The notes below the pieces were generated by a model. The model made no database searches. It was not told the DNA's origin and worked only from the letters and a program-made list of their open reading frames with translations. A stretch of DNA of 64,000 nt from Lepidodermella squamata (lineage: Eukaryota; Animalia; Gastrotricha), in the NCBI GenBank assembly GCA_047495785.1, contig JBLDXI010000046.1, positions 1,364,001-1,428,000 of the forward strand, in the 5' to 3' direction. Positions 11,818 through 28,903 of the stretch are shown piece after piece (the first letter of the stretch is position 1; each line of letters starts with the position of its first letter). The position numbers and the translations under genes are program-made.

Positions 11818-14800
11818 TCATAAACCAGACGAGTCTTCAGGGATAGCCGCAGCAGGCTGTACAACCGTGACATCAGCTGTTACGACATGTGTTTCGTTCC
11901 TCTCCATCATAATCGGATGGACGGAATTTGTGACCGTCGAAGTTCCAGTTGAGCTCACCACAAAACGAATCACCTGAAGCATGAGGCCAGCACTTGTGTT
12001 TGAAATATTTGAAGCATTGCCAGGAGGCTGCTGAAATATTGCCGATGCTGTAACTGTTGAAGTAGATTGCCGCCTTAATTAAACTTGAAAATTAATGTCT
12101 CGATTTCTCAAAGGAATTTTTTTTTACCTGATAACCGTAGTTGTCATGGTTGCAGTTGCATCAGCAGCGCCGTAATTTTCCATCCGTTGATCCAAACAAC
12201 CACTGAAAAAGTTGACAAGTGTCATGATGATCGAAATGAAGATGCATGTGAACGCGATGAGAATTTGCCGCTGGATCTCATGTTGAATCAAAAAATGAAG
12301 CAGCAATGCCGCAACAAGGGTCGAGACGATCATCAGATTAACGATGTAAATAGTCGCCAGTTCGTGGTACCGTCTCATCGATGGGGTTAAATAATACAGT
12401 TTCCTCGACAAATAACAGCCAAGCAAAAGAAGAATGAGAGCAGAAACTCCGAACAACGAAGACCAAATGATTTGGCCAGACGATGAACAAGAAATGTGGT
12501 AAATTTCTGTCATTACATCCTCTTCATAGTTATAAATCGGCTTCTCAGTCTGTAATATAGATCGGCAGGTTATTGGGTCCCATAGAAACCAGTTCATTAT
12601 GAACGCATTTGAAAGCACGAAGATTGAAACTATAGTTAAAACGCTTCGTTTTTCAAGTTTTTTCACGAACTCTGACGTGAAGAATGGGCTGTAATCGATC
12701 AAAACCTTCGAAGCGTCTGTATTTCGAAAGAATTGGCGCTGATGATTCACGATTTGCTTGTTGACACCTCTCACAGCAAGATGTACTGCGACTGCTCTAG
12801 AAAACGATGATCCAATAACCATTGAAGCTCCGAATAGAGATGCAACGACTCGAACTTCCCACATTACTCTAGGATTGTGCTGGCTTTCCATTGTGAACAA
12901 CACCGCAGCGATATTCAAGATAACGCAGCCTAGATACCCGACGCATTTACTCAAAGGCAATACGTGCATGGCTAGGTCGTTTCCGATCTTAAGCCAGGCG
13001 AAAAGCGTTGTCAAAATAACGAAGGCTTGAATCACGATCAGAAATACCGCAACTCCGATTACAGCGTAATAAACGCCCAAGTTAACCTCAGCAATCAGTC
13101 TTCTATCAATCCACTTGTCTCGTGGCGGCTTATTGTCTGGAGTAGTCCATTTTACATCTGAGACGTTTTGAACCCAGTAATGAGTGTATTCGTAGCCCGA
13201 CGTATTGTCGAACTGTCGGACTAAATTGACATAGCGTAGAGATGTTTCTGGTGACCATTGCCCGATCATTTGTAGATCTGCATCAACTTCACCACGTGAG
13301 TTGTACTTCATGCGGCCCATTCTCAGTCCGATGTAGTCTATGCCGATGGCAGATTGGTTAGCGACATCCATGACAAGATGCGGTTGATCTTCGTAATCGG
13401 CAAGTGAAAGGTTGAACTTTCGCAGTGTCATATCAGTATTGTGAAGGATAATTAGTCCTTGCATCGCTGTGTCCTGACAAAAATATTCGACCAGTTAAAT
13501 AAATGTTGGTGAAATATTGGCAGATGTCCTCTTGCCAGTTGAAGGATTATGGCGTAATTCAAGTAGGGCCTTGTCATTTAAATATAACCTCATAGCTCAA
13601 TTTAATTAATATGGAAAAGAATCGTCCCAGTTTAAGACATCAATGGGTCATTGAGACTATGAACTAAAAAGAGTCTCCAATATTGAAGCTTCTCATGGAA
13701 ATTTGGGAAATTTTAATCTCCGACCAATAGTCGATAAACAAATGCTGTCGAAGGAGAAATCTGGTTAAGAGTCTCTCACCTCAAAATCCATCACATTTTC
13801 AGCCCAAGAAAGGGGCCGCTGAAAAACTGTCTTGGCAGCCTAACAATTCTTTCTCTACAAATACCTTAGACTTGCTTGAAGGTATCGCAGAATCTAGAAT
13901 CAAATCCCTCTAATGAGTTAAGGAACTACATTAGCAATGGGACAACTTCCCCATTTTCCAAACCCGCTCGAATGTACGAAAAACTTGGATCATAGGAATC
14001 TGTCTCTTTATGTTGGTTCGTTATGTCTCTTATGCTTAGCGAACTTATTTTGTTGGTAAAAAATGGTGAATAATAGAACTCACATGGCACAGGAACCTTG
14101 AGTCGTAGTCTAGCGGCAAGGTATTATTCGCATACTTATTAAACCGTTCATCGAATTCGAAGCTGTCATAACCAAGCCGAGTTTTCAGAGTCGGTACATC
14201 CGTGAACATCACTGGCGATGTGATGAAAGTAAAGCGCAACTGTTCGATGATAATATCAAGGGAGCAGCCAAAGAGCGCCGGTTCCGGCAGATTCCTCGGA
14301 TCGGAAAATTGGATGCCGAGAATGATGAAAACGTAACGAGATCCAGTTACGCCTCGCTTGTAAGATTCGCATAGAAACTTCCAGATCATCCGGGCAATGG
14401 AGCAAAAGTAGACGATGACCCGCACGTCGTTATGCTTGACCTCATTCAACAAGTCTTCATTGACATCGATAAAATATTCGAACATGGCGACCTTCACATG
14501 GTTTTCGCTCGCAAGCCTCTGGAGGAATGTAGCCGAGACGTAGTCGAAAATATTTTCTGCGAAGATGAGAATTCCGATTCGCTGCCATCTGCCAACTTCT
14601 TTGATGAAATGCATTTGAGCATGGGACAGAACGCGACCCGTTGATCGCATGAGATATAAGTTAGGGTACAGCTTCCGATTGCTGAGAAAAGGAGCCGCGC
14701 ATCCTATGTTCACATCGACTAGGTTTAGGTGGTCCAAAATCGGGCCAACAGCTTTGCAGCCGCTGGAAAACATCGGGCCGACCACAACCGGAGACTTGAT

Positions 14801-15109
14801 TAACGAAGCGTTCGAAGCAGTCGATTGATTGAAATCTCGAATGAATTCGACAACTAAACGGGTTTCGTTCGAACCACCCCCGTCGTCCCGGAAAATAGGA
14901 GTGACCTTGTAGTCCTTCAGAAAGTCTGACCTTTCGTTTGCAGCGTCGAAAGCGATTTGCATGGCGATTTTACACGCTGTTCCGTTGAACGGACTGTTAC
15001 CAGTGAATGACATCATCGTTAAAACGGCCAGCTCGTATCGTTGATACGCTGAAACTAGATCGGCCAGTGCAATCATGTAAGCGACGAGTTCAAAGCGCAT
15101 GTGATTCAT
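11818..15109 (-). CDS. Class C GPCR, GABA-B-like (Venus flytrap + 7TM), paralog 1, ~875 aa
   Basis: Exons 15109-14084, 13473-12128 and 12073-11818 are in frame. ANF-receptor-type domain (VVGPMFSSGC, SNRKLYPNLY, DVRVIV), PPRD linker, seven hydrophobic helices, WFLWDP; no Cys-rich domain. Confidence 0.85.
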
Positions 15110-15819
15110 TTTTTTCAACGAAGCGTGTTTTCTAGATTTTATTCTGTGAAAAATTCCACGCGGTGACAAGTAACAGATCACTAATCAGCGACATTTTTTT
15201 TACCCGCACCTGTAAGAGTTGTCATTTTCGTTCTAAATCACAGGGGCAAATTAATGCTTGTCACCTTATTGATCCGACGTTTCACAACCATAAGCATTTA
15301 TGTCAAAATAGACGCAGCAGTTCCTCGATAGCTGTAGTAATACTTTTCACACTGTAAGTAGCAAGTCCTGTCCAGATGACGCCACCCCCAGGGTGAAGAT
15401 GAGGGAGGATCCGGTCTAGTGGAGAATCTTTCAGAAATAATCGAGTAATATTTGTCCAAATGCGAGGGATGTGTTTCCTAGGGTTTTTCCTATCTGACTG
15501 TATTAATAAAGCCGTTATGGCTCACGCCCTGGAAGAAGTTAAGACAAACTCCCCAATATTGATCGAATTTCGACAACGATATTCTGAGCAAAAATCTTGT
15601 TACAACATGAGCACTTTCCTATCACGAAACGTTATCTTTAGAAGTTCTCTTTCTACAGGCCTCAAATGCCAGGACAAATTCCAGGGGCTCAGTTCTTCGT
15701 TCTTTTGATCTGAAAAACAAATGTAGAAACAGTGAAAGATTTAACCATTTATTGTATCAGTAGGAGGATTAGTATTTTATAGTCTTTAGTCGTCATTGAG
15801 CGACATCGAGTTGCGCACA

Positions 15820-18529
15820 TCACGAACTAGGTTGAATAACTGACACATCAGCTGTGATAATATGAGTTTCAGATTCCAGGTGCTGCTGGCCTCCCGCAAT
15901 AGGGTGAACTGAATTGTTCGCCGTTGAATTTCCCGTTGAGCTTACCACCAATCGAATGACGTGCAGCATCAGCCCAGCACTAGTATTCGAGTTGTTATTA
16001 CCAACACTCGGCGGCTGCTGGAAAATGGCTGACGCAGTGAGAGTGGAGGAGCCTCGTCTTCTAGATAAATGCAAAAATCATATTCCCCGCCGGAAATTTC
16101 AGTGAAATAAGTTTACCTGACAACTGTCGTTGTTACAGTCGCTGTTGCGTCGTTATTTGGGGCGAAAGTTTTCTGCCGATGATCGATGCAGCCGCTGAAA
16201 GAATTGACGACTGTCATCATCACAGAAACGAGAACACAGCCAAATGCAATAACAATTCGCTGCCTCGTCTCGTCTTCAATCAAAAAATGCAGGAGTAGTT
16301 CGGCGACGAAAGTCGAAATTATCATCAGGCTAACGATGTAAATCGTCCCTAGTTCGTGATATTTTCGCATTGAATACGTTAGGTAATAAAGCTTTCTTGA
16401 CATGTAACAGCTCACTATTAACAAGATAAGCCCAGATGCGCCTGAAATTGATGACCAAATAACTAGGCCCGACGAGGAACATTTCACAGAATGCATTATT
16501 GTAGAAGTGTCCTCTTCATAGTTGTAAATAGGATCTTCGTCAATAACTTCAAATTTGCAGAAGATCGGGTCCCATAAGAACCAGTTCATGATAAAGGTGT
16601 TAGATAGAAAAAATATAGAGGCAGCCGTGAGCACACTGCGTTTCTCAAGTTTCCTAACCATGTCCGAGGTGAAAAACGGTCCGTAGTCAATGACGAATTT
16701 CGACGGATCCAAGTTTCGAAAATGCTTGCGTTGATGCGATTGAACCTGTTTGTTGAAGCTGAGAACAGCTTGGTAGATGACGACAACCCTTGAAAAAGAC
16801 GACCCTATAACCATCGCACAGCCGACTAAAGCCGCTACAACGCGAACTTCCCAAATCACGCGGGGATGTTGCTGAGTTTCCATGGTGAATAAGATTGCAG
16901 AGATGTTCAAAATTATGCATCCTAGATACCCGATACATTTGGTAAGTGGCAAGACATGCATTGCTAGATCGTTCCCAATCTTGAGCCAGGCGAAAACTGT
17001 TGTAAGAATCACGAAAATCTGGATAAGGATCAGAAAAGCCGCAACGCCAATTGCCGAGTAATAGAAAGGAATCGGCACCTCACGCGCCATTCGCTTTTCG
17101 ATAACTCTATCCCGCGGGGGTTTGTTGTTTGCAGTTGCCCATCTTGCTTCAGACGTGTTCTGAACCCAGTAATTCTCGTAGTCATACCCTGAAGTGTTGT
17201 CATATTGGCGGACTAAGTTGACGTAATTCAGTGAGGTTTCAGGCGACCATCGACCAATCATTTGAAGATCGGCTTCAACCTCCCCGCGCGAGTTGTACCT
17301 CATCCGCCCCATTCTTAAACCGATATAATCGACACTGATTGCTGACTTATTGACAACACCCATGACAAGTCGTGGATAGTCCTTATAACTGGCCAGGGAA
17401 AGGTTTTGCTTCTTCAACTCCCGGTCCGCATTGTCTAATACGATCAAACTCTGCATTACTGTATCCTATGATAGTATATTTATGAATTAGAGTGAGCTCA
17501 GTGATTTGCGTAACTTACGTGGCACAGAAAACGAAATTCATAATCAAGCGGCTGTTTGTTTTTCGTCAAGACATTGAATCGTCTTTCAAACTCGAGACTA
17601 TCATAGCCGAAATGGTTCTTCAACGTCGGAATATCGTTGAACATTACCGGACCAGTTAGATAGGTGTACCTCAACTGCTCAACAATAATGTCTCGCGAAC
17701 ATCCAAACAAAGTTTCATCAGGTATATTCCTCGGATCGGTGAATTGAATGACAAGAATTATGAAGACGTAACGTGGGCCAGTAATGCCCCTCTTATAAGA
17801 CTCGCAGAAAAACTTCCAGATTAGTCGAGCCATCGAACAGAAGTAGACAATGACTCGAACGTCGTTTCGCTTGATTTCTGTAAACATTTCCTCGGTAACG
17901 TCGAGGAAGTAGTCGAAAATAGTTATCTGAGCTGCATTTTCATTCGCAAGCTTCTGTAGTAACGTAGCCGTGACGTAGTCGAAAATGTTCTCGACGTAGA
18001 TCAAAATTCCGATTCGCTGCCATCTCCCGACGTCTTTGATGAAATGCATCTGAGCAATCGTGAGAGCTCGCCCCGTCGATCGCATCATGTACAGATTGCG
18101 ATAGATCCGACGATCTGTAAGGAAAGGCGCCCCGCAGCCCTGACTTACCTCGACGAGATTCTCATGGTGAAGCATTGGCGCGATGGCTTTACAGCCGCTA
18201 GAAAACATTGCCCCAACAACCAGAGGCGACATGATCACGCTTGAGTTATCGCATTGGTCAAAATGGCGGATGAATTGAACGAGAGCTCGAGCAGCCTTAT
18301 TGCCAGCTCCGTCGTCTTTGTATATCACCTTAAGGTTGTAATCCCCCAATATGTCAGGGCGGCTATTGGCCGCATCAAATGCGATTTGCATGCCAGTTTT
18401 GCAGGCCGTTCCATCGAATGGGTCGTTGCCCGTGAAGGTGGTCATCACGAGGATAGACAGCTCATACTTGGCAAAAGCTGCCAAGTCGATTCGAAAGAGA
18501 ACTAAGAACGATAAGAATACGACTTTCAT
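15820..18529 (-). CDS. Class C GPCR, GABA-B-like (Venus flytrap + 7TM), paralog 2, ~866 aa
   Basis: Exons 18529-17519, 17465-16117 and 16060-15820; same intron positions as paralog 1 and clearly homologous throughout. Confidence 0.85.
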
Positions 18530-27009: not shown

Positions 27010-28903
27010 TCATATTAATTGATGATAAGTTGAAGTTCTATTCCGTTTTCGTGTGGCTGATCGAACTGCGGTTACTAGGCCTCTAAAATTATTCAAAGTA
27101 TCATTATGTGAGCATTCTTTTCGATGACTCACCGTTGTTAGACTTTCGTGAATCTTGTTTATTGGCAAATTCATAGGGTAAACCTTGCCGAGAGCAAAGC
27201 TAGCTCGTCGGATAGTAGTTGGATGCATAGGCCTCTTCTCATCAAACTTCTGTGCGATAGGCTCGAATGGAACCGGCTTGATCACTTCAGAAATCTCCAG
27301 GGTCAACTCGTGCTCGTAAAGGCAAACCAGAACGAAAAGTACCATGCATTCGAACCCGGAGATGAGAAAGAAGTACCCAGAGATACCAGCACGCCACATG
27401 CCCTGTTGGTTACAATTGTAAGTCGTGTAAAGCAAGGCGAAATCGTCGAATGCCGCGACTCCGCTAAACAGCGCCAGAACCATTGACGCCATGAGCATGT
27501 AGGAAAATTTGCGGAAATAATCGTTGATTGCTCTCATATCAGTTTTGATAAACTCTCTATCACGGCGGAAGAATCGTAACCGTACTGCCAACATGACTAG
27601 AACGACGAAATTTAAAGCCGCGGCTAAGAAGCTCAAAACGTATAAGCATTGAAGAACGGAAGCTTTCAACGGCGCCATAGCTCCCAGAGTTACGTAACCG
27701 ATCACAGCCGGCTTAGCCATGGAACTGCCGTTGATAACGTCGTTTCCAAACGCAATGAACTTCGTGGCATCCACCGTCATGCCAACTGAAAATGTGTCGT
27801 TTAGCTGTAGAATTTCGCAGGTATTAGAGCTATTCGTTGATAAGTCGCTGCATAAATTCCCATCGCTAGCTACAACATCCAGGGCAACCAAAGCTGCGGA
27901 CTGATTCGAGTCGTAGTGAATTCCGACGAAATCACCCTGGTAAATCGCTATCCTATCATCGACATTAATTACAAAGGCTTGAAGGCCAGGGTCGGTGATT
28001 TGAAGTTGATTCGAGTCGACCAGAGTAAGCTTCGAACGATTCGCTACAAAACGCCATACGTCGATGTTTATCGTTCCCGTAGTTGAGGCGACTATGTCCC
28101 ATTGGCGCAGATCGCCCGAACATTGGAACTGCATCTTCGGGAAAAGGTAGGAGCCGAAAGGGGGTAGAGTGACATTGGTCGAGGAAATACCGACACCAGG
28201 ACTCTCCTGAGCTATTGCTTCTTCATAAACAAACCTACTGTCCCCCGTCGTGCAAATATCGGAGTTTGCATCGCCACCGGGTAAACACTGGTCTGGAAAA
28301 TGAATCATTTTAACTTATAGAAGGAAGAAAATGACCAGTCTCACCATCTGGTCGGCAAGTAGGAGCTTGGGACCATACACATCCTGATGAATTGCAGGTA
28401 CAAAAAACGTCAGAAGCGTATCGCATCGTCGATAGATATCCCTCCTGGCAAGTGTATCTTACATGGACAGCGCCATACTGAGTGTCATTCACGTAAGTTG
28501 CGCCTTGAACGTAAGGCGCCTGACTCGGGTCACACGTGTCGAAAACTCCGGCAGTACGGCGGCTCGTCAGATTTTTGCCTAAGCCATCTTTCGGCAGATA
28601 TTTCACCTTCGCCGCAGATATGAAGTTCATGTTGAAATCTCCCAGCGGGGCGCAGAAAATTGTTTCGAAATCTGTAGCAGCCAGGGCTTGTTCAATGTCG
28701 AAGATGCCATTTGTACTCGTTGCGTTGTGCCGCGCTAGACAGGCATCCCATAGACCGACTTGCACGCGGTCAACTTCGCCGTCATTCTCGCTAAAGTAGA
28801 CGTACTGCAGGCGTCGTGGGACTAAAATAACGCCGAGCAGGCAAATTATGATAGTTGCTGATAGAACTATACACACACGAGAGAGAAAGGTAACCCGCTT
28901 CAT
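27010..28903 (-). CDS. Claudin/PMP22-like four-TM protein with a sushi domain and a second beta-rich domain inserted in extracellular loop 1, ~613 aa
   Basis: Exons 28903-28345 and 28292-27010. TM1 is followed by GLWDAC...FC (claudin-superfamily signature), a sushi domain (CDP...YTCQEGY...FC...W..APTC), a FQCSG..W...VWR...GDFVGI domain, then three further TM helices. Confidence 0.75.

Follow-up and report, generated by a model that had tools for sequence, protein, structure and literature searches.

Small tetraspan proteins of the claudin type are viewed as strands of cell junctions or as helpers of channels and carry short loops, the known first loops of the claudin superfamily having roughly 50-100 residues. 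Members of this superfamily typically have a first loop that is large, contains strands and bears a pair of cysteines, features that are not typical of tetraspanins or of the MS4A and MARVEL families. Sushi modules, also called complement control protein (CCP) modules, are found as strings in type I or secreted proteins, and those of DAF/CD55, CR1, CD46, IL-2R alpha and IL-15R alpha have in common a cysteine framework, a Y-x-C-x-x-G-Y core and a tryptophan before the last cysteine. Here we analyse a gene of the gastrotrich Lepidodermella squamata, located on the minus strand at positions 27010-28903 of a stretch of 64,000 nucleotides (hereafter the window; assembly GCA_047495785.1, contig JBLDXI010000046.1, positions 1,364,001 to 1,428,000), whose predicted product is a four-span membrane protein bearing a single sushi module and a single jelly-roll domain in its first outside loop. 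This arrangement, a tetraspan with a sushi and jelly-roll first loop, seems to be undescribed.

We propose that the gene encodes a glycoprotein of about 612 residues with four membrane crossings, an explanation in which, taken as a whole, our confidence lies a little above even. The first transmembrane segment (TM1) would act as a signal anchor, and the first outside loop would lead from a cysteine-bridged stub through a divergent sushi module and a lectin-like jelly-roll to TM2; TM2-TM4, a short second outside loop with an invariant cysteine, and a basic tail with an RRxS/T site would complete the protein (Table 1). A preliminary description of the locus had listed TM1, a GLW/C motif, the sushi block, a beta-rich domain, TM2-TM4 and a tail, and every one of these elements was found again in its place. 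The enlarged first loop that it reported also holds, at a measured length of ~365 residues rather than ~330.

With the claudin/PMP22/EMP/TARP superfamily the protein shares four spans, both ends predicted inside, a larger first and a short second loop, a GLWxxC motif soon after TM1 with a conserved cysteine further on, and, in the model of a homologue, stub strands followed by a short helix. It differs from that superfamily in the length of the first loop, in the two folded domains lying between the stub and TM2, in the invariant cysteine of the second loop and in the lack of a C-terminal PDZ-binding motif (no -YV ending). Tetraspanins (PF00335) have a large second loop with a CCG motif, whereas here the large loop is the first, and the second contains a single cysteine; compared with MS4A/CD20 and sarcospan, the first loop again stands apart, MS4A loops being short. 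The Pfam models of tetraspanin and MS4A type gave no match for the window gene, and fold matches to such families were at the background level of helix bundles.

The family to which the gene belongs is small and, from the sequences recovered so far, appears restricted to one lineage, being made of three genes and three metagenome clusters. In the genome searched (121.2 Mb, 151 contigs) it has exactly three members, the window gene and one copy each on contigs C32 (41% identity) and C48 (38% identity), the two paralogue matches having E=1e-57 and E=2e-33. An exhaustive HMMER search of 1.84 billion representatives retrieved three clusters of full or nearly full length (E=3e-40, 1e-37 and 1e-30), all from ENA metagenome contigs, and a further 64 clusters that share the beta domain alone. 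Word-index protein searches with exon 2 and the family alignment A1 added nothing new, a scan of JGI metagenomes with alignment A2 found no relatives, and NCBIfam gave no matches for the window gene. With paralogues on C32 and C48 and three clusters of homologues from other sources, a chance open reading frame (ORF) can be ruled out.

In the window, which has ~44% GC, no tRNAs and short introns, the gene appears on the minus strand as two abutting ORFs, 28903-28310 and 28308-27010. The ends of the intron that would join them can be read directly from the DNA, as GTGAG at 28344 and TTTTCCAG ending at 28293, with the GT at 28344-28343 and the AG at 28294-28293. The resulting 28345/28292 junction is in frame, with a split codon G|AC for Asp, and in the paralogue L002 this very position is interrupted by an intron of ~53 nt, with a split codon G|AT that likewise gives Asp. 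Two of the homologues, P0002 (614 aa) and P0003 (583 aa), are single ORFs on metagenome contigs that run uninterrupted across the junction point, where a homologue reads ...CRPVDKCIQPGESDVDIC... and the window gene ...CRPD/D/QCLPGGDANSDIC...; moreover, exon 1 can be aligned over its whole length both to exon 1 of the paralogues L002 and L003 and to the N-terminal regions of the homologues P0002 and P0003. Because intron position and phase are kept in L002, and because the reading frames of P0002 and P0003 stay open across the junction, we conclude from these alignments that the two exons are one gene coding for one protein, and not two separate transcripts, an eventuality raised in the preliminary description. 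Exon 1 and exon 2 were queried separately in the database searches; for the architecture as a whole, we turned to the natural homologues with a single ORF.

Table 1. Features of the sushi/jelly-roll tetraspan gene, in window coordinates and in order along the minus strand.
Feature	Coordinates	Strand	Description
Exon 1	28345..28903	-	ATG at 28903; codes TM1, membrane-proximal stub and sushi module; phase 1 end
TM1	28817..28879	-	Residues 9-29; hydropathy peak 3.1; putative signal anchor, probably uncleaved
Membrane-proximal stub of first outside loop	28535..28816	-	Residues 30-123; GLWDAC and second conserved Cys
Divergent sushi/CCP module	28355..28534	-	C124 to C183, six Cys, W177
Intron	28293..28344	-	52-nt GT-AG, phase 1; exactly between sushi module and jelly-roll domain
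Exon 2	27010..28292	-	Jelly-roll domain, TM2-TM4 and cytoplasmic tail; stop codon 27010-27012
Lectin-like jelly-roll beta-sandwich (predicted)	27676..28290	-	Exon-2 residues 1-205; no Pfam model
TM2	27583..27657	-	Exon-2 residues 212-236
TM3	27439..27507	-	Exon-2 residues 262-284
Second outside loop	27391..27438	-	Short, ~16 residues; family-invariant C-N and invariant Trp
TM4	27316..27390	-	Exon-2 residues 301-325
Cytoplasmic tail	27013..27315	-	~100 residues; basic RRAS site at 27199-27210

Concerning the sushi module, the HMMER check against Pfam Sushi (PF00084) gave no match at E<=1 in exon 1, L002, P0002 or P0003, so that, unlike CCPs of the DAF/CR1/CD46 type, it lies below the Pfam threshold; it also differs from the CCPs cited above by an extra pair of cysteines. 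Searching the PDB with the family profile, we found CCP modules of DAF/CD55 (CCP3/4; E=8e-6) as well as IL-2R alpha, CR1 and CD46, the match to DAF aligning the Y-x-C-x-x-GY core, the tryptophan and the last cysteine. In the AlphaFold model of P0003 the sushi part has a predicted local distance difference test (pLDDT) score >80, and Foldseek matched it to the sushi modules of IL-15R alpha and DAF with probability 1.0 and TM-scores of 0.57-0.65. The four-cysteine framework, the conserved tryptophan and the likeness to CCPs in both profile and fold place the module among the sushi domains. Judging from the profile match and the modelled fold, it is a real but divergent CCP, and the sushi domain of the preliminary description is thus upheld.

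The second domain of the loop starts with exon 2, which opens with a cysteine-containing lead-in (QCLPGG...DIC); the beta domain carries the motifs FQCSGDLRQW ... IDVWRF ... GDFVGIHY and ends in PAVIGYVT. A model of exon 2 built with 37 aligned sequences has a pLDDT of 82-95 over the core, and Foldseek matched it to a cyanophage capsid protein (E=6e-4), to the lectin-like domain of Cwp84 (probability 0.98) and to phage fibre proteins; for the P0003 model, APC10/Doc1 and CBM6 were among the jelly-roll matches. According to these models, the additional folded beta domain foreseen in the first outside loop is a jelly-roll, a lectin-like sandwich. Wntless ranked first among the Foldseek matches of the P0003 model, but with a probability of 0.21 and a TM-score of 0.08, and was rejected as a fold relative.

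Identity to the jelly-rolls of Cwp84 (Clostridioides difficile, PF18560), of phage tail-tip and capsid-decoration proteins, of APC10/Doc1 and of CBM6 is 11-13%, and unlike these the domain of the window gene is an animal extracellular module with motifs of its own (F-x-C-x-G ... VWR ... GDxxGxHY). It had no match in Pfam. In the ESM Atlas the jelly-roll matched nothing but unnamed clusters (0.89) and PF18560 (0.84), and the TM2-TM4 part gave nothing usable. By Pfam and column conservation, we could not find any known sugar- or metal-binding site, nor sequence membership in lectin-like or galactose-binding-like families. The only near-invariant columns of the jelly-roll alignment are glycines, a pattern more suggestive of a scaffold for binding than of an enzyme.

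The same jelly-roll is widespread in the L. squamata genome, where we found at least 78 matches, with tandem arrays on contigs C15, C19 and C55 whose long ORFs alternate the jelly-roll with Pfam-recognised Sushi repeats. In other animals, annelids among them, it adjoins Kringle (Owenia fusiformis, P0011), PAN, astacin-ApeC-CUB-C-type lectin, EB and Sushi domains, and partners such as Sushi, Kringle, PAN, astacin, CUB and C-type lectin indicate that it is an extracellular module. The secreted sushi and jelly-roll proteins of C15, C19 and C55 and of O. fusiformis (P0011) share the domain at 27-39% identity, usually beside a sushi module, in long repeats that lack a tetraspan base, whereas the window gene has one sushi and one jelly-roll within the loop of a membrane protein. 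The arrays occupy ~744-875 kb, 2.48-2.83 Mb and 3.24-3.44 Mb of C19, 4.98-5.04 Mb of C15, and 100-150 kb and 515-530 kb of C55 (loci L009, L010).

As for the membrane part, the N-terminus consists of a basic MKR, the hydrophobic run of TM1 and then PRR. The TM helices are modelled at a pLDDT of 70-80 in the P0003 and exon-2 models. Between TM1 and TM2 lie ten of the 12 N-glycosylation sequons (N-x-S/T), a distribution that fits an extracellular location of this stretch, and the inner loop between TM2 and TM3 is basic and ~25 residues long. Hydropathy, sequons and models all predict four helices with both termini cytoplasmic and the first loop the larger, in line with the four-span topology proposed earlier. 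In the stub, VGLWDAC occupies exon-1 residues 49-55 (GLWDAC at 28739-28756), and the second conserved cysteine is C84 (28652-28654), followed by P-L-x-[DE]-F-N. The invariant C-N of the second loop belongs to a YNCN motif (27409-27420), and in alignment A9 C104, N105 and W110 are invariant.

The cytoplasmic tail is modelled at low confidence and is mostly disordered. It carries, at columns ~680-690 of alignment A1, what looks like a conserved site of the basophilic-kinase type (RRxS/T), which reads RRAS in the window gene, RRAT in P0003 and RKRSS in P0002; basic sites of the L002 tail read RRRMS, KRRSS and VRRMT. This may be a basophilic-kinase or a 14-3-3-type regulatory site. Separately, a candidate optional GT-AG intron of 50 nt can be read from the sequence alone at 27083..27132 on the minus strand, and would swap the last ~40 residues for a shorter C-terminus with a 14-residue end.

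The most likely role of such a protein is that of a cell-surface receptor for binding or adhesion. Its sushi and jelly-roll head is a two-module cassette that dozens of secreted proteins encoded in the L. squamata genome also carry, and its ligand would be a protein or glycan outside the cell. The role of the four-helix base would be to anchor this head in the membrane, where it may form cis-oligomers, and a basophilic kinase could regulate the tail. The invariant cysteine of the second loop may tie the head to the base, as the number of cysteines on the outside is even (14). With regard to origin, both paralogues have an extra phase-0 intron between the jelly-roll and TM2, so that the jelly-roll is there an exon of its own; given this and the phase 1 of the intron between the two modules, exon shuffling probably brought the cassette into the loop region of a tetraspan gene. 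The preliminary description had spoken of a scaffold turned into a receptor by domain insertion, of which the receptor or adhesion role remains reasonable, and the claudin nature of the scaffold is far less secure.

Indeed, of the claudin-like tetraspan proposed earlier, the predicted topology and the GLWxxC motif stand, the second cysteine is conserved at a spacing other than the classic one, and membership of the superfamily does not follow. We consider the chances about evenly balanced that the base is a very divergent member of the claudin/PMP22 superfamily, and plausible that it works like a claudin-type tetraspan. Kinship is suggested by an hhalign comparison of the N-terminal part of the family with the Claudin_2 genes of the same genome (probability 69%, P=4e-5), which covers only TM1 and GLWxxC, in register, and whose outcome was the same with a deeper claudin profile (only 7 added sequences). 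The family pattern is [GSR][LI][WFI]xxC, with a conserved second cysteine 13-50 residues on, and in the P0003 model the fold of the stub consists of four strands followed by a short helix, the two conserved cysteines being placed on adjacent strands.

A number of results weigh against this kinship. HMMER searches with PMP22_Claudin (PF00822) and Claudin_2 (PF13903) gave no match at E<=1 for either exon, L002, P0002 or P0003, and a scan of the genome with the same models at E<=10 identified ~10 other loci and none of the three family loci. Likewise, sequence searches of Pfam, NCBIfam and the PDB found no match to any tetraspan family, and three profile searches of the PDB returned no claudin-family chain. 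The TM2-TM4 part, compared by hhalign with the same Claudin_2 profiles, reached a probability of <1% (P=0.1-0.3). In the P0003 model, fold scores to claudin-15, TARPs and Cav gamma1 are no higher than those to sarcospan, CD20-type proteins and soluble helix bundles, the stub has a pLDDT of only 55-66, and no fifth strand is predicted in the second loop; in the claudin superfamily, an outside sheet with four strands of the first loop and one of the second covers a left-handed four-helix bundle. Finally, the second cysteine of the window gene lies 28 residues past the first, against 8-10 in the W-GLW-C-C signature of classic claudins, whose two cysteines sit on neighbouring strands.

These results leave a good deal of weight, short of an even chance, for the alternative that the four-helix base belongs to a new tetraspan family unrelated to claudins, whose GLWxxC motif and topology would be convergent; the architecture and the likely receptor role would then be unchanged. 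Such a family would be in keeping with the lack of any claudin HMM or PDB sequence match even at E=10, with the unmatched TM2-TM4 part, and with scans of the genome by N-terminal and C-terminal family profiles, which found no intermediate member lacking the insert. It is countered by the N-terminal P=4e-5, which beats the C-terminal background of TM segments alone by three to four orders of magnitude, and by the large first loop with strands and a cysteine pair, which fits the claudin superfamily. On the claudin side, the furthest-reaching reading is that of a genuine, though very divergent, member of the claudin superfamily in which exon shuffling turned the first loop into a receptor head of sushi and lectin-like type. 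Anchored in the membrane, it would belong to a large recognition system of sushi/jelly-roll proteins specific to the lineage, and would sense or dock the same ligands as the secreted arrays; this reading we regard as rather unlikely.

Two other explanations concern the ends and the partners of the protein. Its N-terminal segment, placed at the extreme N-terminus after the basic MKR, might be a cleaved signal peptide, which would leave a mature three-span protein with a free N-terminal ectodomain and the rest of the topology unchanged. Throughout the family, however, the hydrophobic run measures 19-21 residues and precedes PRR or PK, a cleavage motif of small residues being absent, and AlphaFold packs the segment (residues 2-38 in P0003) with TM2-TM4 as a four-helix bundle, which makes cleavage improbable. 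The least probable of the explanations that we considered is that the protein assists an ion channel or receptor as an auxiliary subunit, in the manner of the claudin-superfamily members TARP, Cav gamma and GSG1L, with the enlarged loop contacting the ectodomain of its partner. Cav gamma1 and TARPs are among the best structural matches within the claudin superfamily, and genes of the class C G-protein-coupled receptor (GPCR) type lie 9-13 kb away in the window; nevertheless, neither Pfam nor the PDB profile search showed sequence similarity to TARPs, there is no conserved linkage to a channel gene, and the modules of the head are generic binding modules.

The genomic surroundings of the gene provide some further observations. 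The sushi-ankyrin gene reported next to it is indeed adjacent, ~300 nt downstream and on the same strand, and the idea of a specific pairing was not borne out: the metagenome contig L012 carries a homologue whose ankyrin neighbour is best matched, in the L. squamata genome, on another contig, C1, the long ORFs located up to 10 kb from the C32 paralogue include no ankyrin gene, and ankyrin repeats occur at ~2,000 candidate places in the genome. Convergent ankyrin-repeat genes lie within ~1-2 kb of the C48 paralogue (L033:1217-3310, minus strand, corresponding to G000:C48:670616-672709) and of the L012 homologue (L012:5622-6721, minus strand), and these two neighbours are not each other's closest relatives. 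At 14045-18529 of the window, on the minus strand, ORFs with ANF_receptor and 7tm_3 domains look like exons of one or two genes of the class C GPCR type, and the homologue on contig L013 adjoins a gene with ANF_receptor and kinase domains.

Among the other claudin-like loci of the genome, L025 (G000:C20:900225-901367, plus strand) is an ORF of 381 residues with a weak match to Claudin_2 (25 bits, below cut-off) and a GIWVFC motif; with an apparent second outside loop of ~150 residues, it is a possible further case of a tetraspan whose loop is enlarged. The Claudin_2-type loci G000:C33:914228-914785 and G000:C58:345240-345797 have identical scores and lengths (31.3 bits and E=1e-5 each) and may be haplotype copies kept in the assembly.

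The jelly-roll described here is an animal extracellular domain that has no Pfam model and merits definition as a family. A pair of folded binding domains in the first loop of a claudin-type member, or of a look-alike, would demonstrate that such a scaffold can be converted into a receptor and, if the claudin-superfamily receptor reading is true, this would represent a so far unknown role for claudin-type scaffolds.
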